DNA from: Azolla caroliniana
Taxonomy: Eukaryota; Plantae; Polypodiophyta
Length of the DNA: 64,000 nucleotides
Assembly (NCBI GenBank): GCA_043228905.1
Contig: JBHGNT010000006.1
Location: 6,634,001 to 6,698,000 of the forward strand
Reading direction: 5' to 3'
The number at the start of each line of letters is the position of its first letter. Within the stretch, counting starts at the first letter, position 1. The translations under genes and the position numbers were made by a program. Shown here piece after piece: positions 11,768 through 63,400 of this stretch. The notes under the pieces were generated by a model, which ran no database searches, was not told where the DNA came from, and saw only the letters and a list, made by a program, of their open reading frames with translations.

Positions 11768-14700
11768 ATGTCTGATTATCACGAAGACACGGATGAGACT
11801 ACTAACTTTATCGAGAGCATGGATATAGCGTCTCTAACTGGAATTGAGAGCATCATCGAGACTTTACAGGAGCCATTTGAGGATATGGAAAGAAGAATCT
11901 TGATCTCGAGCATGGTCCAGGATGCAGTCTGTAGAGGCTTCCTTAAGGCTATGGAAGAAGATTTCTCTGCTCAGCTTTCGGAGAAAGACGCAGTAATAAG
12001 GCTTCTGGAAGGAAGGATGGAAGAGAAAGACAAGGAGATCTCGAACCTCACCAAGGGTTTAAAAGCCACAGGAAACTGGGCAGAAGGAAATGACAATCTT
12101 TCTTCATTCGGTCAATTTAATTCAGTTTCTGTTGAATCTTTGGAACTGAAGTTGCGAGAAAGAGAAGAAGAGATTTCAAAGAAAAATATGGAGCTGGAGT
12201 GTTTGGCTTCTCGTATCACACAAACTTCTTCTGTTCTCAACTATGAGTGTGAACGAGCTTTGCTTCTAGAAAATCAATTAAATTCTTTGAAAGAACATAG
12301 GAGAAAGAAAAGCCAGGAAATCTTCTCGCTTTTGCACTGTGAGAGCAAAAGGGATGCACTTCTTGAGATGCAATCAACAACGCAAGAAATGGAGCAAGAA
12401 ATGCGAACGACATATCTAAAACAACATATAGAGCTTGAGAATATAGTTGTGGATGAAACCATTGCTACTCATGTGAAAGAGTTAGACTGGAAAGCTGATG
12501 TAGAATCGTTGGTCATTGGGGTTCTTCTAGAAGGTTGGTACCGACAAGTAACCAAGTTACTACAGACCTTGCAAGTTGGATTGACACAGAAAGATCAAAG
12601 AATACTCTACTGCGAGAAGATGTTGATCACTCTCAAACAGACTATAGAACTTCTACAGAATGATACAATTGATAGGGCTGGAGGTTCGCGGATGGATTAT
12701 TCTAGTAGACCAATATCAACGGATGTGAACGACTACAGTAGACTATCTGGAATGAAGAAAGAAGAGGAAAGCCTAGAGTTAGAACTAAAAGAAATCATGA
12801 ATGATGAGCTACAATATGCACCAGAGTTTGACACTCTTCTGGAAGCACTCATCAGAAGCATCAATAACATTCAAGACACCCAAAAACTTGAAATTGAGCA
12901 GCAATTTGCAAGAGAGAAGCTTCAGCATGAGTTGGAGCTTGATATCATCTCAGTAGTTTTTGCACAGGAATTCCATGATGCACTCCATATAGGAGATTCA
13001 ACAAAACACTTGTATAGTAATGATGACAGGGGTGAGAAGACCATCTCTAACAACTTTGAAGATCTGGAGGCGCAGCTTGAATCTTTCCTAGAACTGGAAG
13101 CTAGTAAACTAGAGATGATAAAATCTGGATGTTCTACATCTATTGCTAGGTGTGAATTCAAGCTGGAAACGTTGATGGAAAACCTAGCACATCAGGTTAA
13201 TGAGATGAGGACAAAGATTTCTTTTGTACAAGAGGCTGTCAAGCAGCAGGAATGGAAACACATGGTCGAGCAGGATATTCTCATAACCATTATTGGGGAT
13301 ACGGTTTCAGAGATGAACAGGAAACTGTATATAAAGGATACTTTTGTCTCAACAGAACTTGCAGAAGAGGAGATATTTGGCAAGAATCTAGATTCTCCAT
13401 TGTTAATTCGGAACAAGGATAAACTTATATGTTTATTGAAAGATAATATAGATGAGCTAAGGAAGGAAAAGGCAATCATAGAACAAAAGCTGGATGGAAG
13501 AACAGAGGAGCTCTATAGTTTGAAGAGGCAGTTTTGGAAAGAAAGAGAATTTTGGGTTTCCAGATTATCACCGCCACTGATAAAAGAGTTTGAAGCCCAA
13601 GTTGAAGATCTACCAAAGCATTCATCAGGTCTCTTGGATTTAGAGGAGGAGTATATGAATCTGGAAAGGATTCGATATGATTCTCTTGTAGCTGAGCTGA
13701 GGAAAGAGTGGCTTGCCGAGAAGGAAGGTCTGCTTCAGGCAATGGTAGAAAAAGAAGCTGAAATAGGAAGAATAAAAATGCAACTCATTGAGAACGACAC
13801 AAACAGTGCCACAGTCACTGCTGCAAACCTTTTTGCACGCATGGCTGACCTAAGTGTTCAGGTAGATACCCTGTCTAATGAAAAAATGAAGAAAGACTTC
13901 GATTTTACCAAGCGAGAGAAAGAGTGGCATGAGGAAAAAAGATCCATTCAAGGAGAGGTTGATCAATTATTAAAACAACAACAGAGCTATGCTGCTAGAG
14001 AACATAAATTATTAGATAAAATTGCTGAACTCGAGAATGAAGTAAAAAGCTTACAGTTCACAATGCTAGATCAGCAGTCCCTCGTGAAATTCAAAGAAGA
14101 ATGGGATGCAGAGAGGGAATATTTGCTGAGAAAGGTTTTGGATGGAGAAGATATGATGTCAAGGTTAGCTTTACTTTCTCAAAGGGAGGAGGCCAGTGTA
14201 AAACAAATCAATCAACTGGTGAGTGAAAGAGATCAATTGAGAGCAGAGCAACAGCAGATGGAGACAATTCTTGCGTCTTTTACAGAAGAGAGAGCAGTTG
14301 CTAATGCTCAGGTGATCAAGGAAAGAACAGAGGAAGAACAAAAGAGGAAGTTATTGGAATCAGAATTGACAGAAGTAAAACTTGAATTACAAAAATTACA
14401 AGGTCTAAATGCTGAATGCACAGACAACAGAGCTCACTTTAACTCAGAGATAATTTCTGAAGAGCAGATTAATGTTATATCATTGCAAGCATTACATGAA
14501 TTAAGACAGAAGGTTATTCATACAATCGAAGCAAAATCTGATAGGTACAGAAAATCCAATATGCTACCCACCGTAACAAACAAGACATTTATTTACCTGT
14601 AGAAGTTTATCTGGATTTTCTGTTGTTTGCTTTTAATAGGTATGAGACATATATATGAACTGGGTATTCTCGGATTGAACCAGAGAACTCGCCCATGAAG

Positions 14701-18523: not shown

Positions 18524-18896
18524 ACGGGGTTGCCTACAACTTACAAGTTACAAGTATGAAATCCCAATTCATTGGCTTGTATGAAGCAACCAATACTATT
18601 AATTAATGTCTTAAGGGTGTTAAATACCATTAATTCTTGACTCTTCCTTGCCATCTAGGAAATGGCAATACTCTGTTCCCGTCATGGAGAGAGAGAGAGA
18701 GATCGAGATCCTCTTATTCTTCTGTGTCAGAATGGTTCCTCGGTTTCCCTTCATCATGTATATAAATCACCTATTCATGGATGGGACATTCTAAAGGTTC
18801 TGATGTAATCAGGAATCACGAAAAGGCTGAAGCAATTTGATGCAAGAAAGTAGGCGCCACTGATGAAATCAAGCACCCGTCGCAATCTATTTGTAC

Positions 18897-20882
18897 ATGT
18901 TTACATCATGTGATAACATGAAAGGGCTTGATAAGAGGCTCACCCTGATGCTCAAGCAAGGCTCTCCTTTACCAGAGTGCCTCCTACAATCATTTTTAGA
19001 AGAAAGCTATGGTATAGAAGCTGCAAGACCTGTGCACTACACAATGTGCCTTTTCCAACCTCGCTTGACATTGCTTCCAAACTGCCTTATTCGGGTTTTT
19101 GCTTCTTCTAAGATGCTACTAGAGGCTAACCTTGTGTTTTGTCAGATTTCCAAACCGTCTGTTCATTCGTGGCAAGCAATCATCTCAGCTTATCACACAT
19201 GTGGTGAATATGTTTGGGCTCTCCATCTCTACCACCACATGGTGTTAGGTGGAGTATTGCCCAATAGATTCATTTTCTCGTGTGTGCTCAGAACTTGTGC
19301 AATTTCCGGAGAGTGGAAAGAAGGAATGCATATACATGAACATGTCATTAGAAGTGGATTGGATTCCGATGTCGTTGTGGGCAGCACTCTCCTTGATATG
19401 TATGCAAAGTGTTCAAATGTAGAGGATGCAAGACGAGTATTTGATAGATTAAGGAACCGAAATGTGGTATCTTGGAATGCATTGATATCAGGTTATGTTC
19501 TTAATGGGCTCGGCCACAATGCTCTTAAGCTTTTAAAGGAAGTGCCAGAGCCAAACAAGGTCACATACATTTGTTCATTGAAAGCATGCACTCAAACTGA
19601 AGACCTAATGCAAGGTAAAAGATTGCACCAACAAGTAATTTATAAAGGGCTCGAGTCCGATGTTATCATCGGTAATACACTTATTGATATGTATTCTAAA
19701 TGTGGCGAAGTTGATGGTGCATGTGCTATACTTCATAGCTTGCTGAATAGAAATGTGGTCTCATGGAGTGCACTCATTACAGCAGCTTCAGCACATCCAA
19801 CCACTTTTTCATGTATTTATCAACAAATGCAGCATGAGTGTGTGACCCCTGATAGAGTGGCAATGGTAGCATTTCTGAATGTTTGTCGACATACACGGGC
19901 CATTCGGCAGGGAGAGCTAATTCATAGACAAATCATCAAGAGAGGATTTGACACAGACTTGGTTGTAAGAGGAGCTTTAATTGATATGTATATGAAATGT
20001 GACAGGGTTGATGATGCTCAGGATGTGTTTGATGAGATTTCATCCCCTACTATTGTATTATGGGGAGAGATGATATCCGGATATAGCAAGCATGGAAAGG
20101 ATCATCATGCTCTTGAACTCTATAGCAAAATGCAGCATGCTGGCATTGCTCCAGACATGTTTCTATTCTCATGCCTTCTAAAGGCATGTGGACGCATAGG
20201 AGCATTAGAACAAGGAAAGATGTTGCAGGCTGAAATGATGAGAAATCAAATCAAGCCAGATGTGGCTATTGGTAATGCGATGATAAGCATGTATATGAGA
20301 TGTGGTGATCTTATTGAGGCCTGCAGGATTTTTAACGAGTTGCCATATAGGGATTCTACATCATGGGGTTTTATGATCTCGATTCATGCTCAGTATGGTG
20401 ATGGGAAGCTAGCAATCCAATGTTTTAATGACATGCAAAAACATGGTATAAAGCCAAATGAAATGGTATTTACTCGCTTGCTCTCTTCATGTAGTCGTAC
20501 TGGAGAAGGTAGAGAAGGTAAGTTCCAGCTCAATGCCATGAATGAAAGGCAATACCTTGGTCCTAGCAACAAACATTTCACATGCATGCTTGAGCTTCTG
20601 GGCAGTATCGGAGACCTTGAAGCTTCTAAAAATGTTCTTCAAACCATGCCTTTTACACCAAATATTATCAATTGGATGTCTGTGCTAACAGGGTGCAAAC
20701 GATATGGAAATACAGAATTAGGGCAGCACTGCATTCAGCAAATCAACCGGCTTGGTTCTCACTTGTCATTGGGAAATGTTCTCTTGCCAAATATGTACAG
20801 CAAATCTTGCCCATCAGATACCATGCTTAGAAATTACAGTGAAGCTGTCTTACAAATGCGACCAGTAGTTGATTGTGGGTGA
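18897..20882 (+). CDS. PLS-class pentatricopeptide repeat protein with degenerate E domain
   Basis: Intronless ORF (first ATG 18897) of P-L-S triplets (VVSWNALISGY, DMYAKC) with canonical 35-aa L motifs. E-like end (WMSVLTGCKRYGN); no DYW. Confidence 0.9.
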   Translation: MFTSCDNMKGLDKRLTLMLKQGSPLPECLLQSFLEESYGIEAARPVHYTMCLFQPRLTLLPNCLIRVFASSKMLLEANLVFCQISKPSVHSWQAIISAYHTCGEYVWALHLYHHMVLGGVLPNRFIFSCVLRTCAISGEWKEGMHIHEHVIRSGLDSDVVVGSTLLDMYAKCSNVEDARRVFDRLRNRNVVSWNALISGYVLNGLGHNALKLLKEVPEPNKVTYICSLKACTQTEDLMQGKRLHQQVIYKGLESDVIIGNTLIDMYSKCGEVDGACAILHSLLNRNVVSWSALITAASAHPTTFSCIYQQMQHECVTPDRVAMVAFLNVCRHTRAIRQGELIHRQIIKRGFDTDLVVRGALIDMYMKCDRVDDAQDVFDEISSPTIVLWGEMISGYSKHGKDHHALELYSKMQHAGIAPDMFLFSCLLKACGRIGALEQGKMLQAEMMRNQIKPDVAIGNAMISMYMRCGDLIEACRIFNELPYRDSTSWGFMISIHAQYGDGKLAIQCFNDMQKHGIKPNEMVFTRLLSSCSRTGEGREGKFQLNAMNERQYLGPSNKHFTCMLELLGSIGDLEASKNVLQTMPFTPNIINWMSVLTGCKRYGNTELGQHCIQQINRLGSHLSLGNVLLPNMYSKSCPSDTMLRNYSEAVLQMRPVVDCG

Positions 20883-22518: not shown

Positions 22519-24495
22519 TTACCCTGCTTTGGCCACACTAGTATGTCTCTGTCTCATATCCTCGACCTTTTGTGCATCCTCTTGCATTCCAGCAGCTGCA
22601 AATATTTCAGCCATAAGAACATAAGCCGAAGCACATGTATTATCCATTTGTATTGACTGATCAAATGCCAATTTCCCAAGTTTGACATTCCCCCATTTCT
22701 TACAAGCACCTAGTATAGTGTGCCAAATCACCGGATAATCACAAGATGGCATCATCTTAATCACAGACATTGCTTGGTCAAAATGCCCCGCACATCCAAA
22801 GATCACTACCATGCTAATGTGGTGTTCTAACTTAGGGATAACATAATATTTTGTGGTCATATTCTCAAAAAGAACTTGGGCCTCATATAGTCGCCCTGAG
22901 TGACTGCATGCACTCAAAATGGATACAAATGTGACCTTGTCCGGAGAAAGGCCCTCGGTTTGCATCCATTGAAGACAATTTAGTGCTTCATGACACTGCC
23001 CTTGTTCAGCATACCCTGCGATTAGGGCATTCCAAGTGACCACATTTCTAATAGGAAGCTCTTTGAGTACTTTATGTGCTTTGGTAATCATGCCACATTT
23101 GGCATACATATCTACCAAAGTAGTGCCGAGGACAATATCTTTCTCCAACAAGCCTCTACTAACAATCTCGTCATGGATTTGCTTTCCTTTCACAAGAGCT
23201 CCTGTACCACCACATGCCTTCAAGATGGAAATGAAGGTGATTGCATCGGGGGACAGACCCTCATTTTTCATCCGTTCAAAACAGTTCAATGCGTCATGAC
23301 ATTGCCCATGTTGCACATACCCCCCAATTAGTGCATTCCAAGAGACTGCATTTCGACATGAAAGTTCTTGGAGCACTTGTTTTGCTTTTGCAAGCACACC
23401 ACATTTCGAGTACATATCCACCAGAGCAGTACCCAGCATAACATCTTTCTGGTGCATACCTCGAGTCACGATCTCTTTATGGAAAAGTTCCCCCTTGTCT
23501 AATTCTCTTGTACTTCCACATGCCTTCAAGATGCAAGCAAAGGTAACAATGTCAGGAGTGATGCCTTCGCTTAGCATCTGCTCGAAACAAATCAAAGCTT
23601 CACGAGCCTGCCCCTGATGGGCACATCCTGAGATTATTGCAGACCATGAGACTACATCTCGAACAGGAAGATCCAGAAGTGTTTCTCGTGCTTTTCCAAT
23701 CATGCCACATTTTGCATACATATCAACCAAAGCAGTGCCAAGCACAATATCTTTCTCCAATAAGCTCCTAGTTAGGATCTCATCATGAATTTGTCTCCCC
23801 TTCTCTATTGCCTTTACACTACCACACGCCTTCAAAATACAAATGAATGAGATGGTGTCTGGTGAGAGGCCTTCACTTACCATTCTTTCAAAGCAATCCA
23901 GAGCTTCGTGACCTTGCCCTTGTTCAGCATACCCTGATATTATCACATTCCAAGATACCACATCTCGAGTAGGAAGCTCTTCAAGCACTTTCCGAGCATT
24001 TTCAATCATACCACATTTAGCATACATATCCACAAAAGCATTACCAAGTGCAATGCTCTTTTTAAGCAAGCATCTACATGCAGTTTCTTTTTCTATATGT
24101 TTGCCAATATCGATAGCGCCGATTTTTCCACAAGCTTTCAAAATGCAAATGAAAGTGATTGCATCAGGAGAGATGCCCTCTCTTTGCATATTTTCAAAAC
24201 AACCCAATGCTTCATGAACTTTACCTTGTTGAGCGTATCCTGAGATCAACGCATTCCATAAAACTACATTTCGGATTGGAAGCTCTTCAAGCACTTCTCT
24301 CGCTTTCTTTAGCGCACCACATTTTGCATACATACTGATTAAAGCGCTGGCCAGGTAAGAACTCTTTTCAAGTAATCTCGTCTCTATAAGATCAGCATGC
24401 AATGCACTGCCATTGTAAATGTCTTTTTTCTTTGCATATGATTGAAGTAAGGACATAAAAGACAAAATTTTGTCTTGATCCTTACTCTGTCTCAT
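22519..24495 (-). CDS. PLS-E class PPR protein (658 aa)
   Basis: Five P-L-S units of ~102 aa, then P2-L2-S2-E (SACSHSG, WHTILGACKKWG, AYVLM). No DYW. Confidence 0.93.
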   Translation of the reverse strand: MRQSKDQDKILSFMSLLQSYAKKKDIYNGSALHADLIETRLLEKSSYLASALISMYAKCGALKKAREVLEELPIRNVVLWNALISGYAQQGKVHEALGCFENMQREGISPDAITFICILKACGKIGAIDIGKHIEKETACRCLLKKSIALGNAFVDMYAKCGMIENARKVLEELPTRDVVSWNVIISGYAEQGQGHEALDCFERMVSEGLSPDTISFICILKACGSVKAIEKGRQIHDEILTRSLLEKDIVLGTALVDMYAKCGMIGKARETLLDLPVRDVVSWSAIISGCAHQGQAREALICFEQMLSEGITPDIVTFACILKACGSTRELDKGELFHKEIVTRGMHQKDVMLGTALVDMYSKCGVLAKAKQVLQELSCRNAVSWNALIGGYVQHGQCHDALNCFERMKNEGLSPDAITFISILKACGGTGALVKGKQIHDEIVSRGLLEKDIVLGTTLVDMYAKCGMITKAHKVLKELPIRNVVTWNALIAGYAEQGQCHEALNCLQWMQTEGLSPDKVTFVSILSACSHSGRLYEAQVLFENMTTKYYVIPKLEHHISMVVIFGCAGHFDQAMSVIKMMPSCDYPVIWHTILGACKKWGNVKLGKLAFDQSIQMDNTCASAYVLMAEIFAAAGMQEDAQKVEDMRQRHTSVAKAG

Positions 24496-24554: not shown

Positions 24555-24635
24555 TTAATAAAATCTCTCATCAATCCATAAGGACTCATAATAAGAGATC
24601 ATGTGTGCGAAATCAGGTGATGTCGAGCTGTTGAA
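24555..24635 (-). pseudogene. Disabled OSB-type PDF motif fragment upstream of the PPR gene
   Basis: Reads FNSSTSPDFAHMISYYESLWIDERFY*, which aligns to YNSRSSPDFRHRITCEILWMDG of the 35085 gene. It is out of frame with ATG 24495 and ends in a stop. Confidence 0.7.
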
Positions 24636-26144: not shown

Positions 26145-29063
26145 TCAGTCTCTAGGATGCTTAGTTTTTCTTGAACGAGAGGCCTTAGAACCGCAACCCG
26201 GATGGCTTTGATCCTCGACATCATTTCCTTTAGTCCGGCATATATGAGACTTGAGCTTGCCTCCGAGAGTTCTAGGGTTCGGCATTTGCGAGGCTCGACC
26301 TTTCCTGAGCTTCTCGAGCTCCTCATGCATACCCGAGCACTCCCTCTCGAGTTTGTTAATACACCTTTTCATATGGTCCATGTCAACTTTCAAAGCTTGA
26401 TTGTCACGGAGAGCATTGGCCCATCCATCAGCCCTTAAAGCCACACCTTGCACAACTCCATCAGGCAAGGATTGATGAGGCAAAAAGGGGTGAGGATCAT
26501 CATCAATCATGAAGCAGCTTGCTATCACTGTCCGGAGTTGTAATTGTTCAAAGAAAAGAACTTGCACAATGATACGTAGCGGGAGGCGTTCATTCTGTGC
26601 CGCATGCGAACAAGCCTCAAGTGAAAGCTTCTGGCAATCCATTAATCGGCAAAGCCGCTCTTTTTCTTCCTCCCGCAACCATGGATGAGCCTTTACAGCA
26701 TAAAAGGAGACAATAAATCACTTGCAAATCACAAATTTCAGCATTGCACCCTATTCTCATACCATTTCAAGCATAAAAAAAATGTAATCCACATAAAAAA
26801 TAGCCTAGTATGATGCACAAAAAAACATGAATCTAAACTTATGAATCAATCTAATACATTTAACACAGCAAATCTTAAAAGAATAGACTGCCTCTTCGAG
26901 AGGGCATAAATTAGAGTATTATAGGAAACATACCTTCAAATATATGTCAATAGCCCGATAAAGCCCATCATGAGAAATTCTGGCATAATTTGGGAGAGCT
27001 TCAGCCAGATTTTGAAATTTTGATGCCTTTAGATTCACATCTGGAGCAACTTCCGCAAGATAGTTATCTATGAGCCTTGCTACTATCCTCATAGGAGTAA
27101 GTGAAGGCGAGTTAATGACATTCTCATCAATATCATCGTCATCATCATCATCACTCTCACTATCAAATGTCTGAGATGGTATATGTCCAGCCGATTGCTC
27201 AAAAAAGAGGAAATGATCGACAATTCTGCGAACACAGTCTATATCATATAAAATCTCGACATTGTAAGCTAGATTCGGAAACAACAAATCTTCCAAGCTA
27301 GCATGTTCAAGCTGCAAACCAATCCTCCTCTCTATATTGCTTCGGCAATCAGCACTTGCAGACAACAAGATAGCATTCTGAAGCAATTCAGAAAGAAACT
27401 TTATAGGAACAACAGCCTTTTGCATAGGTAAAAGGCTTTCTATGGTTTCCAAGATAACGGTCTGATCACCTTCGGATGGAACTGATGAAAGAGATAGCAA
27501 TCTAAGCTTACTCCCTCCTACTTCTTTGTTAATAGAATTTCGTTTGTGAAGGGCAGGAAGGTACCTCCTTGCAAAATGCATCAACGCACCGGCAATGTTC
27601 TCCGGCTTTATGCCCCGCTTTTGCATCGCAACTATGACTCTTTTGTAAAGAGGAAGGCTTAGCATTGCTATATCATCATACCACCAATCGCTACTTGCTC
27701 TCGAAGGTCTCGCGCCGGTGCTTATACCATTCCATAGGAAGCTTCCTTTGGGGCTTTGCATATAAGTGGTCGGCATTGGCCATCCGAGCAAGCTTGGGTC
27801 TGTGCAAGCATTGAGAGCTATGGCATCCACACAAGCGCCGACGATACCAAGTTTCTTTGCCTCGGAAAATACGAATGCACAACTCGATAATGCTCGAATG
27901 CATTCTTTCCAGTGTCTCAATACAACCTGGTTAAGAAACCCCTCAGTCCGGGCTATCAAATTCCCTTCTCCAAAGTCCTCAGACATCTCTAGATACTCAC
28001 CCACACATCTCAGTGGCACAACATTTGCTGCTGTCAGCTCTACCTTGACACCATAACAAAACTTCACCGCTAGTTCAAAGGTATCAGGACCTCCTGGAAT
28101 CCCAGAGAGATCAATATGAGGTATTTCTTCACCCCTATCCAAGCAAGCTTCGATAATGTGGGCAAGCTTCCTGCTCCGAGTAACTAGAGGGAACTGGATA
28201 ACAATAATGAACCATATTTCATTGCCTTAAACACCATGGAGAATTGTACAAAAAACAAGACTGCAAAGGAAGTGGATAAAAGCAATTTGGTGAGTTGAAG
28301 TAGAAACACTGACCTTGTGGAGATGAAAAGAGGCTTCTGAAATCTCTATTGTAACATCACTTTGAAGCCCAGCGGTATAGAACCTGAATCACTTCAACAG
28401 ATTAGTATAGTTTTCTTTTTGCTAAAGTTCCTCTGAACCATAATCTAAGGAATAATTCTCAACAAACCCAATGCCACCACAGCATCTATATATCGTCCAA
28501 ACACTTATTTGCGTCATTATGCAAACATTTACAGAACTTTTTATAACCTAAACCTTCAATGGTGTCACGATATGACAGACCTATTGTTGAACACACACAA
28601 GACGAAAATGGGGGGCTTCTCCATTGTCCAAGAAGATAAAGACACACAAGTTTTTGTTCTTAAAATAAACCCTTACAATTCTTTTATTATTAACAAATCT
28701 ACAATGTCATACGCAGAGAATCATAGGAACAAGAAGGAAAACAGAGCATGTGTTTTTGGAGAATTATTACATTTAGCAAGAAGAATGAGAACCTCTGGAG
28801 AGAGAGAGAGAGAGATGAAAAAAAACAGAGTATGTCTTGGAAATTCAAAATTCTACCAAAACAATTAAGTGCTCATTTTATCCGGGGAGCGAGGAAACAT
28901 TGAAAAACCATATCATGATTGGAATGTAAAACTTCTCCAATAAAATGAGGTGGGCTTTTTATCCACACACAGAGAGAGGAAGAGATTGAGAGAGAATCAC
29001 AAACCATGATCGTCCTTTGCGTTGAAATCTATCAGGTTTTGAGCCAAGCTTCTCGCAAGCCAT
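26145..29063 (-). CDS. BTB/POZ-NPH3 (NPH3/RPT2-like, NRL) family protein (~644 aa)
   Basis: Exons 29063-29005, 28383-28314, 28193-26934 and 26690-26145 with GT-AG and matching phases. Motifs [16 protein letters not shown]|[38 protein letters not shown]|AHP and [11 protein letters not shown], then a C-terminal coiled coil. Confidence 0.95.
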
Positions 29064-32700: not shown

Positions 32701-35084
32701 TGTATGTGTATATGTATATGTAAAATATAAGGAGTGTGTTTTCTAGTAAGAAAACAATTTCTTGTTTACCTTTTTAACGCAAAAGTTACCAAAATGAAGC
32801 TACTTTCCCATTAGTTAGGAAGGATTATTACAAAGAGACTGTACAAGGAGGCTTATACACAAATCGAGGAATCTCCCTCCAATCAAGTTCAAGAAAATGA
32901 GACTACTTACCTAGCCTTTCGGACTGACTACTTAATGTAAGTAGATACCTATAGCTAAAAATGGTGCCCTTCAGTGTTGGCTAGTACGAGCCAACTCCTT
33001 GGGCCTTTAACGAAGGGAGGGTGGCAGGCGAGTAGGAAACAGCTAGCGTGATGGGTTGGTAGTTCCACCTCGGGCCACTTCATCATTGCGTCACCATAGG
33101 CGTGTTTCGCCATTTTGGGTTTTCTCATTTATTTACATCACTAGTTATTTTTGTATTTCTTTGAAGCTTTTTTGTTTGTATCATCATCGTTTAATTCATG
33201 CACAAACACATTACATCCCACAAACATATCAAAAGGGTAATGGTGCTATTGAAAATAACATGATATTGTTTCATAGTCCCCTTCCGAGATAAAAGTATTG
33301 AAAGTGTCGTGTTGCTATTGCAAATAACATGGACAATATGGCCTCCTCCCCCTCTTTAAGAAGAGTGTTCACTTCACTTCAATGCATCTTAATGACCAAA
33401 ATTGAACCATCATGGAGGAGTGTGTAGTCAATCACAAAGTCACTTACGTGTTCCACTATTATCATAACTTCTAAAGGGAATATCTAGGGAAAGTGAATTA
33501 ATCAAATATATATGTGAGGATTTTGTGTATTTTAAGGAATTTATTGACGTTAATGACAAGGATGGATTTAGATTAAGGATTAATGTTAATGATATTAAGG
33601 AATATTGTTGCAATGGTGGGGCTTTTAGTGGTATGGTAATGATGAGTTTATATGAATAGTATGACAATGTTGATTTTTGTTAAGGGTATGATAATGATAA
33701 GAATCACGATTATGTTAGTGGTATGCTCCATGGACTCCAACAACAACCTTTATGCAAAAGATAATCTAAATAATTGATATATATCATAACAGTATAAATG
33801 TTCATGAGCACGTCAAAAATGTATAAAGAGTCTCTGACAAAAATGATATGATTAGGTACATCACAATTGCATTGAGAATGGTGGTGAATATATCATGGTT
33901 GTGTAAAGGGCATAGATGGTTAGAGATTTCATGGTTGCACATAGAATGGAAGGGTATAGATGGCCATGGGTATGTCATGGATGATGTCATGCACAAACAG
34001 AAGCAAAATTTTTAAAACTCTCCAATATTAGTCAAAGCTCATGGACCACTTGCTCACCAAACACACGTATGCTAATGTGGACACCTAAAAGTTATATTGC
34101 AAAATCATGACTATCAACACTCATTTTGAAGTTTTCCAAGTTTAGTTTAACTTGTTTCACATTGATGCTCATGAATCCTTGAACTTCTACCAAACAACTG
34201 AAGGTTTCATGATGATAATACTAGATGAAACATTCTATGATGATAATGTTGCTCCTTGATGACATGTTTGATCCATTTTAAGTTTCTTCATAATAAAAAC
34301 ATTCTCTGCTGCTTGACCATTTTTACGCCATCACAACTCTGTTATGTATGCTCACTTTGCGTAGTTGACATAGAGGTGTTTATAGGATCTTACAGTGTTC
34401 ATTGAGAACAATTTTCATTTTGTGAAATTTAACCAAATATGGCATTTCATGGAGAAATGGAATTGAGCTTTCTCTCAAGATACTCAAATACAAGGTTAGC
34501 AATACGTTTCACGAGGACTTCATGTTGAATGGTGTGCCATAGGTGGGTTGAGAGTTTCCTGAATTTCCTTCTTCCACAAGAACTATCATGAGGCCACACA
34601 TTTCTAAGCTTCCTATTTCCTCTCAGTTTGCACACATTTTTTCTTCAATGCGAAGATGAGCAAAAGTACCATCATCAAAGGGGGTTTTTGTAACATTCCT
34701 TGGTTCAAAGGAATCTCAATGCATTAGAATCTTACACCAACAGTTTCTCCGTTAAGATTGAATTTAGGAGCTTTGCGATCTGCCACATTTTGTAAAGTTT
34801 GTTACCTTGGCCACACTTTGACTAGGCAACTAGATCTCCTTCATGGCAAACCGCTTACCTTTCAATGCATGTATGCCTTCATAGAACTTACACCATTGTA
34901 CTGACAAGGCCGACATGGAATATCTTCTTTGAATTATACACCCCTTAATCCAAGACTGAACAATGTCCTCGAGAACCACAGCATATTGCCATGTCACAGA
35001 TATAGCTATAGAATTCCTCAAGACATTCTGCAGTGCAACTATTGTCTAATAGAACTGTTTGAACGAATGCCAACATTACAAGCT

Positions 35085-37446
35085 TCACATGTCTCCACTC
35101 CTGAGCACTGCAGCATATTGCAATCTAACCTTTTCAGCATCATCTTGCATCCCAACAGATATAAATATACTACTCATCAAGACATATGCTGCAGCACAAC
35201 TACTGTCTAATTGAACTGTTTGATCAAATGCAAATATCGCAAGCTTCACATTTCCCCACTCTCGACAAGCACGCAGGAGCGCAAGCCAAACTACTGGATA
35301 ATGTGAGCACGGCATTGCCCTAATCACCGAGAGTGCCTTATCAAAGTGCCCTGCATATCCAAAAGCAGCCACCATGCAAGTATGATGTTCTAGGTTTGGA
35401 ATAATACCATACGCCCTAGTCAAATTCTCAAAATATGTTTGGGCATCATCAAGTCGACCTGAGTAATTGCAAGCACTTATCACACACAAAAAGGTAACCG
35501 CATTTGGAGAAAGGCCCTCATTACGCATCCGTGTGAAACAATCCATTGCTCTATGACCTCTGCCTTGTTGTGCATACCCTCCAATTAGTGCATTCCAAGA
35601 GACTACATCTCGCATAGGAAGCTCTTCTAGGGCTTGTTGCGCTTTTGCAAGAGCGCCACACTTGGCATACATATCCACCAAGGCAGTCCCAACCACAACA
35701 TTCTTCTGTAAAAGACCTCGACTCACGATATCATCATGGATTTTTTCCCCTTTACTTATAGCTCCGGTGCTCGCACAAGCTCTCAATAAGCAAGAAAACG
35801 TGGTCTCATCTGGGGCGAGACCCTCTTGTTGCATCCATTCAAAACATTTCAATGCTTCATCACCTTGCCCATGCTGACTATACACTGAAATTAATGCATT
35901 CCAAGAAGCTACAACTCGAATGGGGAGCTGCTTTAGAACTTGCTTTGCTTTGGAAAGCATACCACATTTGGCATACATATCCACCAAAGCATTTCCAAGC
36001 ACGATGTGATTCTTCAATAAAACCCTATTCACAATCTCATCATGGATTTGCTTGCCCTTACTCACAGCACCCACACTCCCACAAGCTTTCAAGAGAGAAA
36101 TGAACGTGACAACATCTGGGGAGAATCCTTCACTTTGCATCTGTTCAAAGCAATTCAATGCCTCATGGCCTTGGCCCTGTTCGGCATACCCAGAAATTAG
36201 TGCAGACCAGGAGATAGCATTCCTGGCCGAAAGCTCTTCAAATGTTTTCTGTGCTTTGATAAGCTGTCCACATTTTGCATACATATCCACCAATGCAGTA
36301 CCAATCACATTATCATTCTCTAAGAAGCCCATATTCATTATCTCATCATGAATTTCCTCCCCTTTAACTACAGCCCCTACACTCCCACAAGCTTTCAAGA
36401 TGCAAATGAAAGTAACTCGATTTGGAAATACACCCTCACTTCGCATCCGCTCAAAACAATCCAATGCTTCATGAAACTGCCCTTGTTGGGCATATCCTGA
36501 AATCAAAGCATTCCAAGAGACTACGTTCCGACCCTGAAGCTCTTCAAGCACTTGTTGAGCTTGTGCAAGCATACCACATTTGGCATACATGTCTACCAAA
36601 GCTGTGCCGAGGACAATATCATTATCTAGAAATCCCCTATTCACAATCTCTTTATGAATTCGTTTACCTTCGACTATAGATCTTGAACTTCCACATGCTT
36701 TTAAGATACAAATGAATGTAACTGCATCAGGAGAGAGACCCTGCTTTTGCATTTTTTTGTAACAGATTAGAGCTTCTTGACCTTGTCCAGATTGAGCATA
36801 TCCCGATATTATTGCATTCCAAGAGATGAGGTCACAGACAGGAAGTTCGTCAAGCACTTGTTGTGCTTTTGAAAGAACGCCACATTTTGCATACATATTG
36901 ATCAAAGCACTAGCTAAATAAGGGCTCTTCTCAAGTAAACCTTTCTTCACAATATCAGCATGTAATTCAGTACCTTTGCAAAGATCCTTCCTTTGGGCAC
37001 AAACCTTGAGTAATGACGCAAAAGTAATACCTTCATTGTTGATTTCCTTGAGCTTTCGCTCTTCATGTGTAGAGAGGAATAAGTTTTCTCTTCTCTTCAG
37101 CTCTTCAAGAACCCAAGAAGGATTGTACCACCCATCCATCCACAAAATCTCACAAGTGATTCTATGTCGGAAGTCCGGGGACGATCTAGAATTATACTGC
37201 ATGAAAACAGCATAAATCATCTCTTTGTCACACCATACCATATCATCACATTCGTACCACACCGTACCATTGCATGAGATAACATTAATAACATACATAC
37301 ATACATGTATGCATGTATTGGTTAGCATAACCATACTTTACCTTGGAGCTCCTATTGTCATACCACAGTGAAGGATCCCCGAAGTAATCCTTCCATAAGA
37401 GACACATCCTTTCGGAGAATTCGCTTGATCTCCGCTGCCTCGCCAT
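35085..37446 (-). CDS. PLS-E PPR protein with N-terminal OSB-type PDF ssDNA-binding motif (~738 aa)
   Basis: Exon 1 is 37446-37342 (ccATGG start, upstream in-frame stop), then a phase-0 intron 37341-37197 (GTAAAG..TGCAG), then exon 2 37196-35085. Spliced N-terminus: MARQRRSSEFSERMCLLWKDYFGDPSLWYDNRSSK|YNSRSSPDFRHRITCEILWMDGWYNPSWVLEEL. Five P-L-S units and an E domain follow. The ORF-track start at 37334 lies in the intron. Confidence 0.88.
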
Positions 37447-52107: not shown

Positions 52108-52434
52108 TTTGAGGTGAATACCTACAACGAATTGTTACAAATTCATAGTAATGTTCCAACGAAAAAAGCCTTAATATCTTTAAAGGGGTCTAAGGCTTGG
52201 TCGGTTCATCCATAGTTTGAGGTGAATACCTACAACAAATTGTTACAAATTCATAGTCATGTTCCAACAAAAAAAGCCTTAATATCTTTAAAGGGGTCTA
52301 AGGCTTGGTCGGCTCATCCATAGTTTGAGGTGAATACCTACAACGAATTGTTACAATTCCATAATCATGTTCCAACAAAAAAAAAGCCTTTAATATTTTT
52401 GGAGGGGTCTAAGGCTTGGTCGGCTCATCCATAG
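52108..52434. repeat. Tandem repeat, 3 x 108 bp
   Basis: tttgaggtgaatacctacaac..ggcttggtcgg(t/c)tcatccatag starts at 52108, 52216 and 52324. Confidence 0.95.
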
Positions 52435-52579
52435 TCTGGCAGCAGGCAATGGACACCACCTACTATCCTAAAGTCACATGTATATACATCTCCGAAGGAG
52501 GACATACGTTGGTCCCAACGTGCATATGCTTGTGAAGTACATACATGCAAAGATAACAATTTCAAGGTGGGACACGATG

Positions 52580-52975
<396 letters not shown>

Positions 52976-53534
52976 TATAGAAATATATACGCATACAAGA
53001 AAGCATTATTTGTCGTACGTTTGGGGGGGAGGGGGAGGGCGTTATCCATGGGCACGAAGAGCGGTTTTGGTTTTTTGCGGGGGAGAGAGCGGTTTCCGTC
53101 CGGTGGGTGGTATTGGGGTGGGTGGTTTTAGCGTTAGGAAAAGAGAGAGAGAGAGAGAGAGACGTGGGGAGGAATGTTTGAATGCACATTCTCTCTCTAG
53201 GAAGCTTCTGGACACTTCCCCTGCCTCCTGCCTTTCACCCCCCTGCCTCCTTCTCTCTCTCTCTCTCTCTCTCAGAACGGGTCCTTGACACGTCATCCTC
53301 TCCACGTCATCAACGTCCTTCTCTCATCTCTCTGATTCTTCTTCTTCTTTCTTCTTCTTCATCCTCTCTGTCTCAGAGCTCTCTGATTGATTCTGTGTTT
53401 CTCTTCATCTCTCTCTGTCTCTGTCTCTGTCTCTGTCTTTGATCCCTCCACCCGCTTCTTGCATCCACCTCTTCTTCGCTGTTCCTGGAGCGCCTCTGCA
53501 GAGATGCATTCGCTTCTCTGAGATAGATAGACAG

Positions 53535-54177: not shown

Positions 54178-56320
54178 ATGGCTGCATCAGGGATCCTTTT
54201 AAATCCTTCTCCTTTAGAAGATTTCGATGCAGTCGCAGCCCGGCACAATGCAATTTCATCGACCCTGAAGCCTATACAAGTGTTGATTGCGACTTTAGGG
54301 GAACAATCATCTATGGTTCCTCTAGAAGTATCAAAGTATGATACTGTAGCTTCCATCAAGATAAGAATTCAAGCTCACCGAGGATTCTTTACTGATCGGC
54401 AGAGACTTGTCTATGCGGGTAAGGAGCTCACGGAAGATGATAAGAAGCTTCGAGACTATGGAGTAAACAATGGTGATGTATTGCACTTGGTATTACGCAT
54501 GTCTGACCTTGTTTCTCTCACTATTAGAAGTGCTAATGGGAGCTCCTTTGTTTATAAAGTCATGCAAAAAGAGAATGTGAAAGAACTTGGTAAAATGCTT
54601 TCCTTAGATCAGGGGGAAGGATCATCCTTGTCCCTTAGCCTGCATGTGAATGCAATACTCAAAGGGGAGAATGTTGAGGACCTTACTGACATAAAGGAGG
54701 TTATTCTCAAAGGGGAGACTCTTCTATGCCTCAGAGTGATTAAGCCAAATGTGAGGTCAACTTCATTTGGCCGAGGTGAGGTGGAGCTTCTGGTTACCTC
54801 GAATATCAGTAGTAGTGTACTAAGCTTAGATAAGTTGCCTGATACTAGTCTGAAGGTAAGAAACTCAAATATTGATAATAATTTGGTTTTTGAAGATAGG
54901 TTGCCTGATACTATTTCAAAGGCAGATATCTTGTCTCAGAGAATAGCAAAGGTGGGGAAGTTATATGAATCTATCTCACTTGCGCAAAAAAAGGTCTCAA
55001 TAACGAGTAAAGAAGGGCATCATAGCTCAATTAGCCAGAAAGGAAGCTTATTCTGTCAACATCCTTCCTTCAAGAGCCATCCAAAGCTCTTAGTACCCAA
55101 GTATCCTATCTCGTTCGAGCTTTCTCCTCTTGTTCGAGAACTTGTAGACCATTGCAAGATGGGCTTGTATGCTGGATATTCTCCCAAGCTCACCCCGGAA
55201 GGTTCTGGAGGTGTTTATATGATGAAAGATGAGAGTGGTTTGCGCAATGTGGCAGTGTTTAAGCCTTTGGATGAAGAGCCCATGGCTGTAAATAATCCTC
55301 GGGGCTTCTTTCCATCCGATAGTGTAAAGAATGGAATTCTCAAAGAAGGGTTGAAGAAGGGAACAAGGAGTGGAGAGGGAGCCTTAAGAGAGGTAGGGGC
55401 TTATATACTCGATCATCCGATGTCAGGTCCTCGAGCGCGAACAAGGGAAGATGTGGCTAGGCGTGCAGTGGAAGGATTTGCTGGTGTTCCTCCAACTGTT
55501 ATGGCAAAATGCTATCATGAGGCATTTCATTATGCCTCTTTTGATGATCATGTGCACCTTAAGGCAGGGAAGATGGGTTCCCTTCAGAAGTTTGTTGATG
55601 CATTAAGTAGCTGTGAAGACATGGGATCCTCGAAGTTCTCGATGGCGGAGGTTCACAAGATCACAGTTCTTGATATGAGGCTAGCAAATACTGACCGAAA
55701 TGGAGGCAATATTCTTGTTTGTAAGGGATCCGATGGATTGTTGAAACTCGTTCCTATCGATCATGGCTATTGTTTACCGGAACAAGTAAGCATTTTATCT
55801 TGTTTCCATTGGATTCATATTATGATTTTTTTTTGTGAGGTTAGGTTCCATCTCAGCTTGTTTTCTTAATTTGCTAGAGATATTATTTGGACTTGCTTTT
55901 TCGTATCGTGGGTCATGATTGACAAAGCCTTGTTGTCTTGTGTAGTTTGAAGAATGCACGTTCGAATGGCTCTATTGGCCCCAAGCACAGAAACCTTATG
56001 GACCTTCTGCTGTGGAGTACATCAAATCCCTTAATGCCGATGAAGACATTGAACTCCTCCAGAGTTGTGGGTGGAATCTCCGGCCTCAATCGGCTCGTGT
56101 TCTGAGGATCTCCACAATGCTCCTCCAGAAAGGTGCTTTAGCTGGTTTAACACCATTTGAAATCGGCTCTATTATGTCCCGCGTTGAATCTCCGGATGTG
56201 AAGTCTCCTATCGAGCTCATTCTTGAAGAGGCTGAAGCCATGAATGTGAAAGAGAAAATCTTTCTCAATGTTGTCTCAGGCATGCTGGATAAGTATATTG
56301 CTTCTTTGAAGGAGCAGTGA
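54178..56320 (+). CDS. Type II phosphatidylinositol 4-kinase gamma with N-terminal ubiquitin-like domains (~660 aa)
   Basis: Exons 54178-55785 and 55946-56320 (phase-0 GT-AG intron). UBL domain (QRLVYAGKEL..LRDYGV..VLHLVLR). Kinase motifs EGSGGVY, AVFKPLDEEP, GEGALREVGAYILDH, NTDRNGGNIL and PIDHGYCLPEQ|FEECTFEWLYWPQA. Confidence 0.95.
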
Positions 56321-60406: not shown

Positions 60407-63400
60407 CTAACTTTGAAAAGACTGAGAATTTATATTTATACAAGCAGACAATAAGTTAACATTTTTACTAGCATCTGCATCAAACAAAATACTTTTTCCT
60501 TGCTTCTTTTTGAAACTAACACATTTCAGTTTCATAGCTTCGACCTTTTCTGCATCTTTTTGCATCCCAGCAGCTATGTAGATAGTAGCCATAAGAACAT
60601 ATGGTGCAGCACAACTCCTATCTACTTGTACTGCTCGCTCAAAAGCCAATCTTGCAAGCTTCACATTTCCCCATTTTCTACAAGCCCCCAACAATGCAAG
60701 CCAAACTTCAATAAAGTCGAAAGATGACATTACCTCTATCACAGACATTGCTTTATTAAAGAGCCCAGCAAATGCAAACACCATAACCATACATGCCTGA
60801 TGCTCTAACCTTGGCATGATACTATACTTCTCGGTCATGCTTTGGAATAACATTTCTGCCTCATTATATAAGCCAGAATGACTACATGCACTTAGAACAC
60901 ATAGGAATGTGACCTCATCTGGAGTGAGACATTCACGTTGCATCTTGTCAAAACAGTTAAGTGCTTCTTGGCCTCGCCCTTCTTGGGCATACCCAGCAAT
61001 TAGTGCATTCCAAGTGACAACATTCCGGACTGGAAACTCTTTAAGCACTTGAGCAGCTTTCGTAATCATCCCGCATTTAGCATACATATCCACCAAAGCA
61101 TTTCCAAGCATAATATTCTTCACTAGCAAACCCCTCTTTACAATCTCCTCATGAATTTTTTCGCCTTTGTCTATCGCCCCTATGCTGCCACATGCCTTCA
61201 AGATGCAAATGAAAGTCACGGCATTTGCAGATATGCCCTCATTTTGCATCTTTTCATAGCATGTTAGTGCTTCATGGCCTTGCTCTTGTTGGGCATACCC
61301 TCCAATCAGAGAAGACCAAGAGACTTCATTTTGAATAGGAAGCTCTTCCATTACTTTCTGTGCTTTTACAAGAAAACCACATTTCACATACATATCCACT
61401 AAAGCATTTCCCAGCACAATTTCCTTCTCCAGCAGACCCCTACTCACAATCTCCGAATGAATTTCTTTGCCTTTGTCTACAGCTCCAATATTACCACATG
61501 CTTTCAAGATACAAATAAATGTGACTACATCTGGAGAGAGTCCCTCACTTTGCATCCATTCAAAACAGTTCAGTGCTTCACTACCTCTGTCATATTGGAC
61601 ATACCCTAAAATCAATGCATTCCATGAAATTACATCTCGAATATAAGTATATTCAAGTACTTCTAGCGCTTTTCCAAGGAAACCAGATTTGATGTACATA
61701 TCCATCAGGGCATTTCCAAGTAAACTATCTTTCTCCAACAAAAAACTAGTCACAATCATGCTCTGAATTTCTTTTCCTTTTTTTACCAATTCATTATTAC
61801 CACATGCCTTCAAGACACAAGTGAATGTGATTGTCTCTGGAGAAACAGCCTCACTTTGCATCCGCTGAAAGCAGTCTAATGCTTCATGATACTGCCCCTT
61901 TTGGGTGTAAGCTGAAATTAGTATATTCCATGAGACTCTGTCTCGAACGAGAAGCTCATTGAGAACCCCTTGTGCTTTTTCAAGCACACCACATTTGGCA
62001 TACATATCCATCAATGCATTCCCAAGTTTAATATCATTCTGCAGCAATCCTCTATTCTCAATTGCGTCATGAATTTGTTTGCCCTTGTTCACAGCTCCTG
62101 TCCTACCACAAGCCTTCAAGATGCAAATGAGGATCCCTGCATTTGAAGAAATACTGTCACCTTGCATCTGCTCGATAAAGTTCACTTCCTCATAGGCAGA
62201 TGAAGATACTATGTTTTGAATAGGAATCTCTCCAAGCACCTGTCGTGCTTTTTCAAGCTGACCACATTTCACATACATATCCACTATAGCAACACCAAGT
62301 AGCATATCCTGTTCAAGAAATCCACCACTCACAATCTTCTCATGAACTTGTATGCCCTTGGCTCTATCTCCTATATCACCACAAGCCTTCAAGATACAAT
62401 AGAAGGTGATTACATCTGGAGAGAATCCCTCACTTTGCATCTTTTCAAAACATGTTAATGCTTCACGAACTAGCCCATCTTGAACATATCCTGCAATCAG
62501 TGCAGACCACGAAATTATGTTTCGAACACGAAGCTTTCCAAACACTTCTTCTGCTTTAGCAAGCAAACCACATTTGGCATACATATCCACCAAAGCATAA
62601 CCAAGAAAATCATCCTGTGTGAGCAATCCCCTTGCCACAATCTCATCATGAAATTGCTTTCCCTTATGGACCTCTCTTGTGCTACCACAAGCCTTCAGGA
62701 TGCAAATGAAAGTGACTACATCAGGAAACAAACCTTCTTTTTGCATCTGTTCAAAACAATCCAGAGCTTCTCGACCTTGACCTAATTGCACATGCCCTGC
62801 AATTAGTGCATTCCAAGAAACTACATTTCTAATGGGAAGCTCTTCTAGTATTCTTCTTGCTCCTGCAAGCATGCCACATTGTGCATACATGTCTACCAAA
62901 GCATTCCCAAGTATGGTATCCTTCTGCAGCAAACCCCTGATGACAATCTCTGTATGGATTGCTGTACCCTTCTCTAAAGCTCTAGTGATTGTACAGGCCT
63001 TTAGGGTGCAAATGAAAGTGACCCCATCCGGAGAGATGCCCTCACTTTCCATCTGTTCAATACAGTTTAGTGCTTCATTAATGCGCCCCTTTTTGGCATA
63101 CCCTGTGAGTAATATATTCCAAGAAACTAAATCTCGAACTTCAAGCTCATCGAGCACTTGTCGTGCTGTTGTAAGCACACCACATTTGGCATACATATCC
63201 ACTAAGGCATTCCCAAGCATAGTATCTTTCAGTACCAAACCTCTACTTGCAATCTCATCATGAACTTGTCTGCCCTTATCAATAGCTTCTTCACTAGCGC
63301 AAGCCTTTAAGATGCAAATGAAAGTCACAACGTCTGGAGAAAGGCCCTCAATTTTCATTTGTTCAAAACAATTTGATGCTTTATGGCATTGTCCATGTTG

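Follow-up and report, generated by a model that had tools for sequence, protein, structure and literature searches.

An intron-split, OSB-type PDF motif ahead of the PLS-class PPR array in a gene of the fern Azolla caroliniana

The PDF motif is known from the OSB proteins of plants, which bind single-stranded DNA in the organelles. These proteins have a central SSB-like domain (PF00436), which is followed at the C-terminus by the PDF motif or motifs (PMC6963530, PMC4166229). The PDF motif of AtOSB1 is sufficient for the binding of single-stranded DNA (PMC6963530), OSB1 and OSB2 favour single-stranded DNA over double-stranded DNA and RNA (PMC4166229), and, according to the reviews, binding of single-stranded DNA by the PDF is known only for AtOSB1 and AtOSB2. 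In this study, we analyzed a stretch of 64,000 nucleotides from Azolla caroliniana (contig JBHGNT010000006.1, positions 6,634,001 to 6,698,000, referred to here as the window), in which a gene on the minus strand at 35,085 to 37,446 encodes a PDF motif followed by an array of pentatricopeptide repeat (PPR) motifs of the PLS class. The PDF motif was reportedly defined by Zaegel et al. in 2006. To our knowledge, the PPR editing factors have usually been seen as pure RNA binders with C-terminal extras, and the OSB proteins as the sole carriers of the PDF. In organellar C-to-U editing, the E-class PLS proteins serve to recognize the sites, and the deaminase is provided by another protein.

An earlier note on this DNA, made from the letters alone, had proposed that the N-terminal part of the protein is a PDF motif of the OSB type. 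To examine its identity, we used a profile of 94 OSB motifs from which all the PPR-linked copies and their clade were excluded, and each exon was scored separately among the 3288 six-frame pieces of the window. Both exons matched this OSB-only profile significantly (scores in Table 1), exon 1 with an independent E-value of 3e-6 over profile positions 5-25 of 63 and exon 2 with an independent E-value of 3e-7 over positions 25-58, and the two matches are collinear and meet at the splice site. With a second profile, built from six PPR-linked motifs of ferns and lycophytes (alignment A1), the matches of exon 1 (positions 3-22) and exon 2 (positions 23-56) abut exactly, and the best unrelated piece reached 5.6 bits. 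The gene carries the PDF signature of approximately 50 residues, W..FF..P..WWDNR..K..P..PDFKHK.T...LW.....P.WV...L, and 13 of the 13 residues that are invariant or near-invariant in an alignment of 121 motifs are kept. The sole irregularity of the motif is one extra residue between K and PDF compared with the consensus. With the homologues and the common intron position described below in agreement, the proposed identity is upheld, and we conclude from the sequence comparison that the motif is homologous to the PDF motifs of OSB proteins.

Pfam, which has no model of this motif, matched neither exon 1 nor the first 52 residues of exon 2 with any of its families, the SSB domain PF00436 included. 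The N-termini of four homologues with the same PDF-PPR architecture also had no Pfam match. A word-indexed protein search with residues 1-60 of exon 2 returned nothing, which is a limit of the index, since the profile searches did match, and an ESM Atlas feature search with the same residues gave no usable match.

The gene structure agrees with the hidden first exon of 105 nucleotides (nt), joined in phase 0 to the PPR open reading frame, that the earlier note had predicted. The start codon lies at 37446-37444, and exon 1 closes with AAG at 37342, after which the GT of the intron is found at 37341-37340. The intron is AT-rich and ends with a pyrimidine-rich tract and an AG at 37198-37197, and exon 2 opens with TAT AAT TCT at 37196. 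The open reading frame thus covers 35 + 703 codons in two exons. A start further upstream in exon 1 is excluded by an in-frame TGA (37461-37459), which lies four codons ahead of the main ATG, so that only 16 residues, which are rich in Arg and Ser, stand ahead of the motif, in line with the count of about 16 given earlier. A hidden SSB-like exon upstream was also considered and was ruled out by this in-frame stop and by the contigs ending near 37490. An out-of-frame ATG at 37454 opens an upstream reading frame of 38 codons (37338-37454, minus strand), which runs across the main start codon and the whole of exon 1.

The predicted junction 37342/37196 was examined with four public runs (three organisms, four studies), the type of which (RNA) was the tool's guess; the runs were assembled into contigs and aligned on 34600-38200. 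One contig of run X1 joins exon 2 to 37342 through 11 letters that are exactly 37186-37196, one contig of run X2 stops exactly at 37196, and 37342 is the exact starting point of contigs of runs X14 and X3, which have a few unplaced letters beyond it. The contigs of the four runs therefore break or join exactly at the junction. The X1 contig has an in-frame 3-nt deletion (37183-37185), by which one Ser is lost and the usual five-residue spacing from K to PDF is restored, whereas the window allele has six residues. The depth was zero from 37504 to 38200 in all four runs, while the same runs extend past the stop codon to about 34600; this absence of upstream depth together with the coverage of the 3' untranslated region is what transcripts would give, in contrast to genomic DNA. 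With sizes of 57-187 million letters, the runs are small. The identity between their contigs and the window is 96-99% and thus incomplete, and alleles, close species, or very close paralogues may be the source of the contigs. The window gene is an intact nuclear fern gene of two exons, the spliced form of which is represented in contigs from all four runs.

The combination of a PDF motif and a PPR array was also found in other land plants. The best 120 PPR homologues of exon 2, which are at most 57% identical to it, come from ferns, lycophytes, and a few other land plants. The textbook PDF signature stands ahead of the PPR array in 7 of these 120, and a more sensitive scan finds approximately 13 when partial and decayed copies are counted. 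The carriers include Adiantum capillus-veneris (several proteins, one with a DYW domain), A. nelumboides, Pteridium aquilinum, Diphasiastrum complanatum (several proteins), and several Sphagnum species. Some of the Diphasiastrum proteins contain two PDF copies and a DYW domain, and P0096 and P0315 are examples of PDF-PPR proteins that bear DYW. Two Adiantum relatives have only partial PDF motifs. The annotated start of another Adiantum protein, P0012, lies inside the motif, and no missed first exon was found within 5 kb upstream of it. An ESM Atlas structure search with the PDF model returned three streptophyte clusters of PPR/DYW proteins (127, 57, and 63 members) with template modelling (TM) scores of 0.82-0.88, and a streptophyte SSB-family cluster matches the same model with a TM score of 0.85.

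The relation to the OSB proteins is also seen when the profile of alignment A1 is compared exhaustively with 1.84 billion representative proteins, of which 1100 matched at E<=0.001. Most of the top 150 matches have 1-13 PDF copies located C-terminal to a region of approximately 200 residues. Ten non-PPR top matches were scanned with Pfam, and an SSB domain (PF00436) was found in 8 of the 10 (5 above the cut-off and 3 weak), ahead of the PDF copies in 7. One match is named 'Protein OSB2, chloroplastic' by its source (E 4e-11). Among the 1100, the seed-plant matches examined (from Rehmannia, Vitis, Kingdonia, and Striga) include no PPR protein, and most of them have an SSB-type match. Judged by these comparisons, the window gene is a member of an old subfamily of PLS-class PPR proteins with an N-terminal PDF domain of the OSB type.

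Odd PDF architectures were observed in P0121 (Kingdonia uniflora, 1160 amino acids), P0165 (1526 amino acids), and P0163 (Striga hermonthica, 1063 amino acids). Within these three, one protein has 13 PDF copies, one has three PDFs ahead of a kinesin motor domain, and one, with SSB and PDF, bears the annotation 'Interactor of constitutive active ROPs 2'. Gene-model fusions may account for some of these architectures.

The earlier note also considered the architecture to be new. In the approximately 8.4 million full texts searched, no paper contains both 'PDF domain' and 'pentatricopeptide', and the papers with both 'PDF motif' and PPR leave the two unconnected; the founding paper of Zaegel et al. 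2006 was outside the scope of this search. [quoted passage not shown] Both parts of the protein are well known, and their combination appears to be undescribed in the searched literature. To this extent the novelty can be maintained, but the fusion is not peculiar to this gene, since it lies unannotated in public moss, lycophyte, and fern proteomes. Because Pfam has no model of the motif, the PDF-PPR proteins are labelled only as PPR or hypothetical proteins, and the domain is missing from their annotation.

The position of the intron is informative about the origin of the fusion. In an OSB gene of Rehmannia glutinosa, one exon ends with WWDNRKNK, the intron has the borders gt...acag, and the next exon begins with RSPNYPDFKHK in phase 0. 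The intron after DNRxxK, which the earlier note had suggested might be shared with OSB genes, is thus present in the one angiosperm OSB gene tested, and the same position and phase were found in one Diphasiastrum and one Sphagnum PDF-PPR gene. That two protein families with no other relation have a phase-0 intron in common inside a short motif strongly supports common descent over convergence. The PDF domain was probably gained from an OSB gene at the exon level before the split of bryophytes and vascular plants. Two PDF-PPR genes of Adiantum capillus-veneris (L001 and L002) are single-exon genes that have no intron in the motif, which suggests a loss of the intron within ferns, perhaps via retrocopies.

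In a tree of the 121 motifs, a single clade (support 95/93) holds 15 of the 16 PPR-linked PDFs, along with short fragments and a small number of OSB copies. The PPR label needs at least 6 changes on this tree, partly owing to short fragments that could not be classified. Since the alignment has only 68 columns, the tree is compatible with a single origin and does not prove it. A more distant resemblance was also observed in the structure search, where two ESM Atlas clusters of hypothetical tailed-phage proteins (Uroviricota, 54 and 122 members, approximately 190 residues) matched the PDF model over 58 residues with TM scores of 0.68 and 0.63. Several parts of the plant organellar DNA machinery are phage-like. 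On the basis of the predicted fold, these clusters are a possible lead to the origin of the PDF.

The remainder of the protein has the composition given in the earlier note, namely five PLS units and an E domain without DYW. Matches to the PPR families of Pfam range from 1e-51 to 5e-93. The array repeats every 102 residues exactly, with five P-L-S triplets after one L-S pair. The P motifs start at residues 123, 225, 327, 429, and 531, and the S motifs at residues 92, 194, 296, 398, and 500. Through the S and P motifs from first to last, position 5 and the last residue form the pairs SD, ND, TN, NN, TN, SD, NV, ND, TD, and NN. A nucleotide preference is known for nine of the ten pairs, which speaks in favour of an array that is functional in RNA binding. 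The E_motif family of Pfam is matched above its cut-off, and by eye E2 ends approximately four residues early. DYW (PF14432) has no match in the protein. The possibility of a DYW remnant downstream of the stop codon was rejected, as neither DYW nor E+ was matched in the downstream reading-frame pieces.

At the 3' end of the gene, a tandem direct duplication with a period of approximately 160 nt (34979-35100 compared with 35138-35261, 83% and 71% identity) repeats the coding segment of E1/E2. The second copy is out of frame and provides the last few codons and the stop, followed by the start of the 3' untranslated region.

Table 1. Coordinates of the gene, its protein motifs, and the decayed PDF motifs in the window
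Feature	Position	Strand	Evidence or remark
5' untranslated leader, minimum extent	37447..37490	minus	contig of run X3 unbroken over 37342-37490
Exon 1, coding part	37446-37342	minus	35 residues: 16 N-terminal, then first half of PDF motif; sequence; contigs of runs X14 and X3 start exactly at 37342
PDF motif, first half (LWKDYFGDPSLWYDNRSSK)	37342..37398	minus	24.4 bits, OSB-only profile; 34.1 bits, PPR-linked profile
Intron	37341-37197	minus	145 nt, GT-AG, phase 0, splits PDF motif; sequence; skipped exactly by contig of run X1; contigs of runs X2, X3, and X14 end at borders
Exon 2	37196-35085	minus	same frame as open reading frame 35085..37334
PDF motif, second half (YNSRSSPDFRHR...NPSWVLEEL)	37098..37196	minus	27.6 bits, OSB-only profile; 44.5 bits, PPR-linked profile
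Linker from PDF motif to first PPR motif, ~23 residues	37029..37097	minus	motif boundaries
PLS-class PPR array, 17 motifs: L-S, four P-L-S triplets, P2-L2-S2	35298..37028	minus	Pfam PPR_2 4.8e-93, PPR 2.1e-86; 102-residue period
E1 and E2 motifs, protein end without DYW	35088..35297	minus	Pfam E_motif 27.5 bits (cut-off 27.3)
Stop codon	35085..35087	minus	sequence
3' untranslated region, minimum extent	34600..35084	minus	contigs of all four runs reach 34600-34700
Decayed PDF second half, upstream of paralogue 22519-24495	24561..24629	minus	15.4 bits, E 0.003 (PPR-linked profile); 13.6 bits, E 0.007 (OSB-only profile)
Decayed PDF first half, upstream of paralogue 43713-46346	43656..43685	plus	10.1 bits, E 0.12, weak

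The predicted structures were obtained with Adiantum homologues, P0042 for the motif and P0316 for the full length. AlphaFold2 on the P0042 motif with the 121-motif alignment gave a predicted local distance difference test score (pLDDT) of 85.3 and a predicted TM score of 0.69, and in the model three short strands lie between two helices. Among the solved structures, no sequence match was found, the best E-value in Foldseek was 2.9, and the best Z-score in an exhaustive VIA-align search was 3.2. The weak rows of WW domains in the structure search were not significant, and a kinship with the WW domain is not claimed. In the model of P0316, which is a PDF-PLS-E protein of 668 residues, the pLDDT is 61-85 for the PDF unit and above 90 for the PPR superhelix, and residues 80-89 between them have a pLDDT of 39. 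The model suggests that the PDF is an independent module tethered on a flexible linker.

The window contains six PLS-class PPR genes in 64 kb: 18891-20882 (+), 22519-24495 (-), 35085-37196 (-), 40738-42546 (-), 43713-46346 (+), and 60407-63976 (-). Only one of them has an intact PDF motif, two have decayed remnants, and no PDF was detected in the other three. In the remnant upstream of 22519-24495, a stop codon lies between the PDF half and the PPR reading frame, and the one upstream of 43713-46346 reads by eye IWRDYFRNPS, followed by a stop in place of the WY pair. Most of the PPR paralogues in the window end at approximately the same point after E2, so the short C-terminus is a trait of the family and not damage, and by eye none of the six genes has a DYW-type ending. 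Elsewhere in the window, the open reading frame translations of 26145-28142 (-), 54178-55869 (+), 11768-14602 (+), and 52425-53189 were read by eye as NPH3/BTB-like frames, a ubiquitin-like and PI3/4-kinase-like frame, a 944-residue coiled-coil frame, and a stretch rich in dinucleotide repeats.

With its 17-motif array and E1/E2, the protein would most likely recognize one or a few organellar RNA sites in a sequence-specific manner. Since it has no DYW deaminase of its own, any editing activity would need another protein, as is the case for the E-class factors of flowering plants. The PDF module may act as a binder of single-stranded nucleic acid without sequence preference. The role that we prefer, tentatively, is that the PDF would hold the factor on single-stranded organellar DNA at transcribed nucleoids, where the nascent RNA would be captured co-transcriptionally. 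The roles suggested in the earlier note, namely action at R-loops, tethering of RNA processing to nucleoids, and recombination surveillance, are candidate functions. It might also be that the PDF binds single-stranded RNA and not DNA, adding unspecific affinity or keeping the RNA unfolded just 5' of the PPR footprint, so that the protein would be a pure RNA factor. PPR proteins bind RNA in a parallel mode, with the N-terminus toward the 5' side of the RNA, and the N-terminal placement of the PDF faces the 5' side of the target. The flexible linker in the predicted model fits such a role, and the clade formed by 15 of the 16 PPR-linked PDFs (95/93) apart from most OSB PDFs makes an altered specificity possible. 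However, the biochemistry of OSB1 and OSB2 reports a preference for single-stranded DNA over RNA (PMC4166229), and the near-invariant residues of the OSB PDFs are all kept, which gives no sign of a changed binding surface. We regard this role on RNA as rather unlikely by itself, yet as nearly equal in likelihood to the preferred role on DNA. A further proposal is that the PDF is a module for protein contact or oligomerisation that pairs with OSBs or with other PDF-PPR proteins, for example to recruit a DYW deaminase. AtOSB2 has been reported to be a tetramer (PMC6963530), the number of PDF copies in OSB proteins varies from one to many, with 13 in one predicted protein as the maximum, and the window protein has no deaminase of its own. 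Nothing, however, ties the PDF motif itself to oligomerisation, and the existence of PDF-PPR proteins with their own DYW indicates that the recruitment of a deaminase is not a general role; we consider this proposal to be improbable.

It also has to be considered whether the gene is functional at all. The PDF could be a relic that happens to be intact but has no role, or the gene as a whole could be a transcribed pseudogene, as might be suspected from the decayed PDF remnants at two of the six PPR genes of the window, the duplicated out-of-frame E1/E2 segment at the 3' end, the one-residue insertion between K and PDF, and the upstream out-of-frame ATG. Against this stand the frame that is open over all the codons of both exons, the complete set of conserved PDF residues together with the canonical PPR code pairs, the transcript contigs over the gene in four runs, the C-terminal ending common to the paralogues, and the retention of the PDF in PPR proteins since the split of mosses and ferns; we consider a relic or a pseudogene to be improbable as well. 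The contigs that skip the intron could in turn be genomic DNA of intronless paralogues (retrocopies) and not spliced RNA, because the run type was guessed, the contigs are not identical to the window, and intronless PDF-PPR genes exist in Adiantum. However, small runs that show no depth over 700 bases upstream and that all cover the 3' untranslated region are unlike whole-genome fern DNA, and the gene has canonical splice sites and an intron at an ancestral position. An origin of these contigs from retrocopies is very improbable.

Taken as a whole, we consider it rather probable that the gene represents an old PDF-PPR subfamily, which gained its PDF from an OSB gene at the exon level and recognizes RNA sites, with the two options for the PDF, DNA or RNA, left open. 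Several points weigh against this interpretation. Import into an organelle is not evident, as the motif begins after only 16 residues in the window protein and after 12-28 in those of Adiantum, unlike in the PDF-PPR proteins of Sphagnum and Diphasiastrum, which have long N-terminal extensions. The upstream out-of-frame ATG at 37454 may lower the translation of the PDF-PPR protein. The score for E_motif is barely above the Pfam cut-off. The contigs may stem from alleles, close species, or paralogues, and the type of the runs was guessed as RNA. The decayed PDFs in two neighbouring paralogues and the partial motifs in two Adiantum relatives suggest that the PDF domain is dispensable in at least some members of the family.

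A wider picture can be drawn, which we put forward as a speculation that is rather unlikely to hold in full. Non-seed land plants would possess a subfamily of RNA-editing-type PPR proteins that is coupled to single-stranded organellar DNA via an OSB-derived PDF. Recognition, and possibly editing, would then take place on the transcribing nucleoid, or the recognition of RNA would steer a DNA-binding module to R-loops or recombination intermediates, and the resemblance to phage proteins (TM 0.63-0.68) would be a lead to the deeper origin of the fold.

The fusion, which has been kept from mosses to ferns, offers a concrete approach to the question of whether organellar RNA is edited on the nucleoid or away from it. 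It also presents the PDF motif as an independent, movable domain with its own exon structure. In addition, the gene illustrates how easily small 5' exons of fern PPR genes are missed, as the first PDF exon lies outside the long open reading frame and the model of Adiantum P0012 starts inside the motif. If the PDF raises the affinity of a PPR protein or directs its localisation, designer PPR proteins could benefit from it.

Compared with the OSB proteins, the window protein has the same PDF motif of approximately 50 residues, a phase-0 intron inside it, and a small predicted fold. However, it has no SSB-like OB-fold domain, its PDF is single and N-terminal, whereas the OSB proteins have one to many C-terminal copies, it shows no evident long transit peptide, and the remainder of the protein is an RNA-binding PPR array. 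It resembles the E-subclass PLS proteins of the CRR4 type from flowering plants in its P-L-S triplets, P2-L2-S2, and E1/E2 motifs, the lack of a deaminase, the canonical code pairs, and the location of the array in a single exon. It differs from them in the extra N-terminal PDF, which is split by an intron, in the slightly truncated E2, and in the very short presequence.

The closest relatives are the PDF-PPR proteins of Adiantum, Pteridium, Diphasiastrum, and Sphagnum (e.g., P0042, P0093, P0316, P0276, and P0307), in which an N-terminal PDF is also followed by a linker and a PLS array. The window protein has a short N-terminus as in the Adiantum proteins and an intron position as in the Diphasiastrum and Sphagnum genes. 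Several of these relatives, however, keep E+ or DYW, some have two or three PDF copies, the PPR part is at most 57% identical, and two Adiantum genes are intronless. As in the PPR-SMR, PRORP, and PPR-DYW proteins, a programmable RNA-binding array is fused to a separate functional module. In those proteins the module is C-terminal and enzymatic, a nuclease or a deaminase, whereas the module of the window protein is N-terminal and non-enzymatic and is known as a DNA binder.

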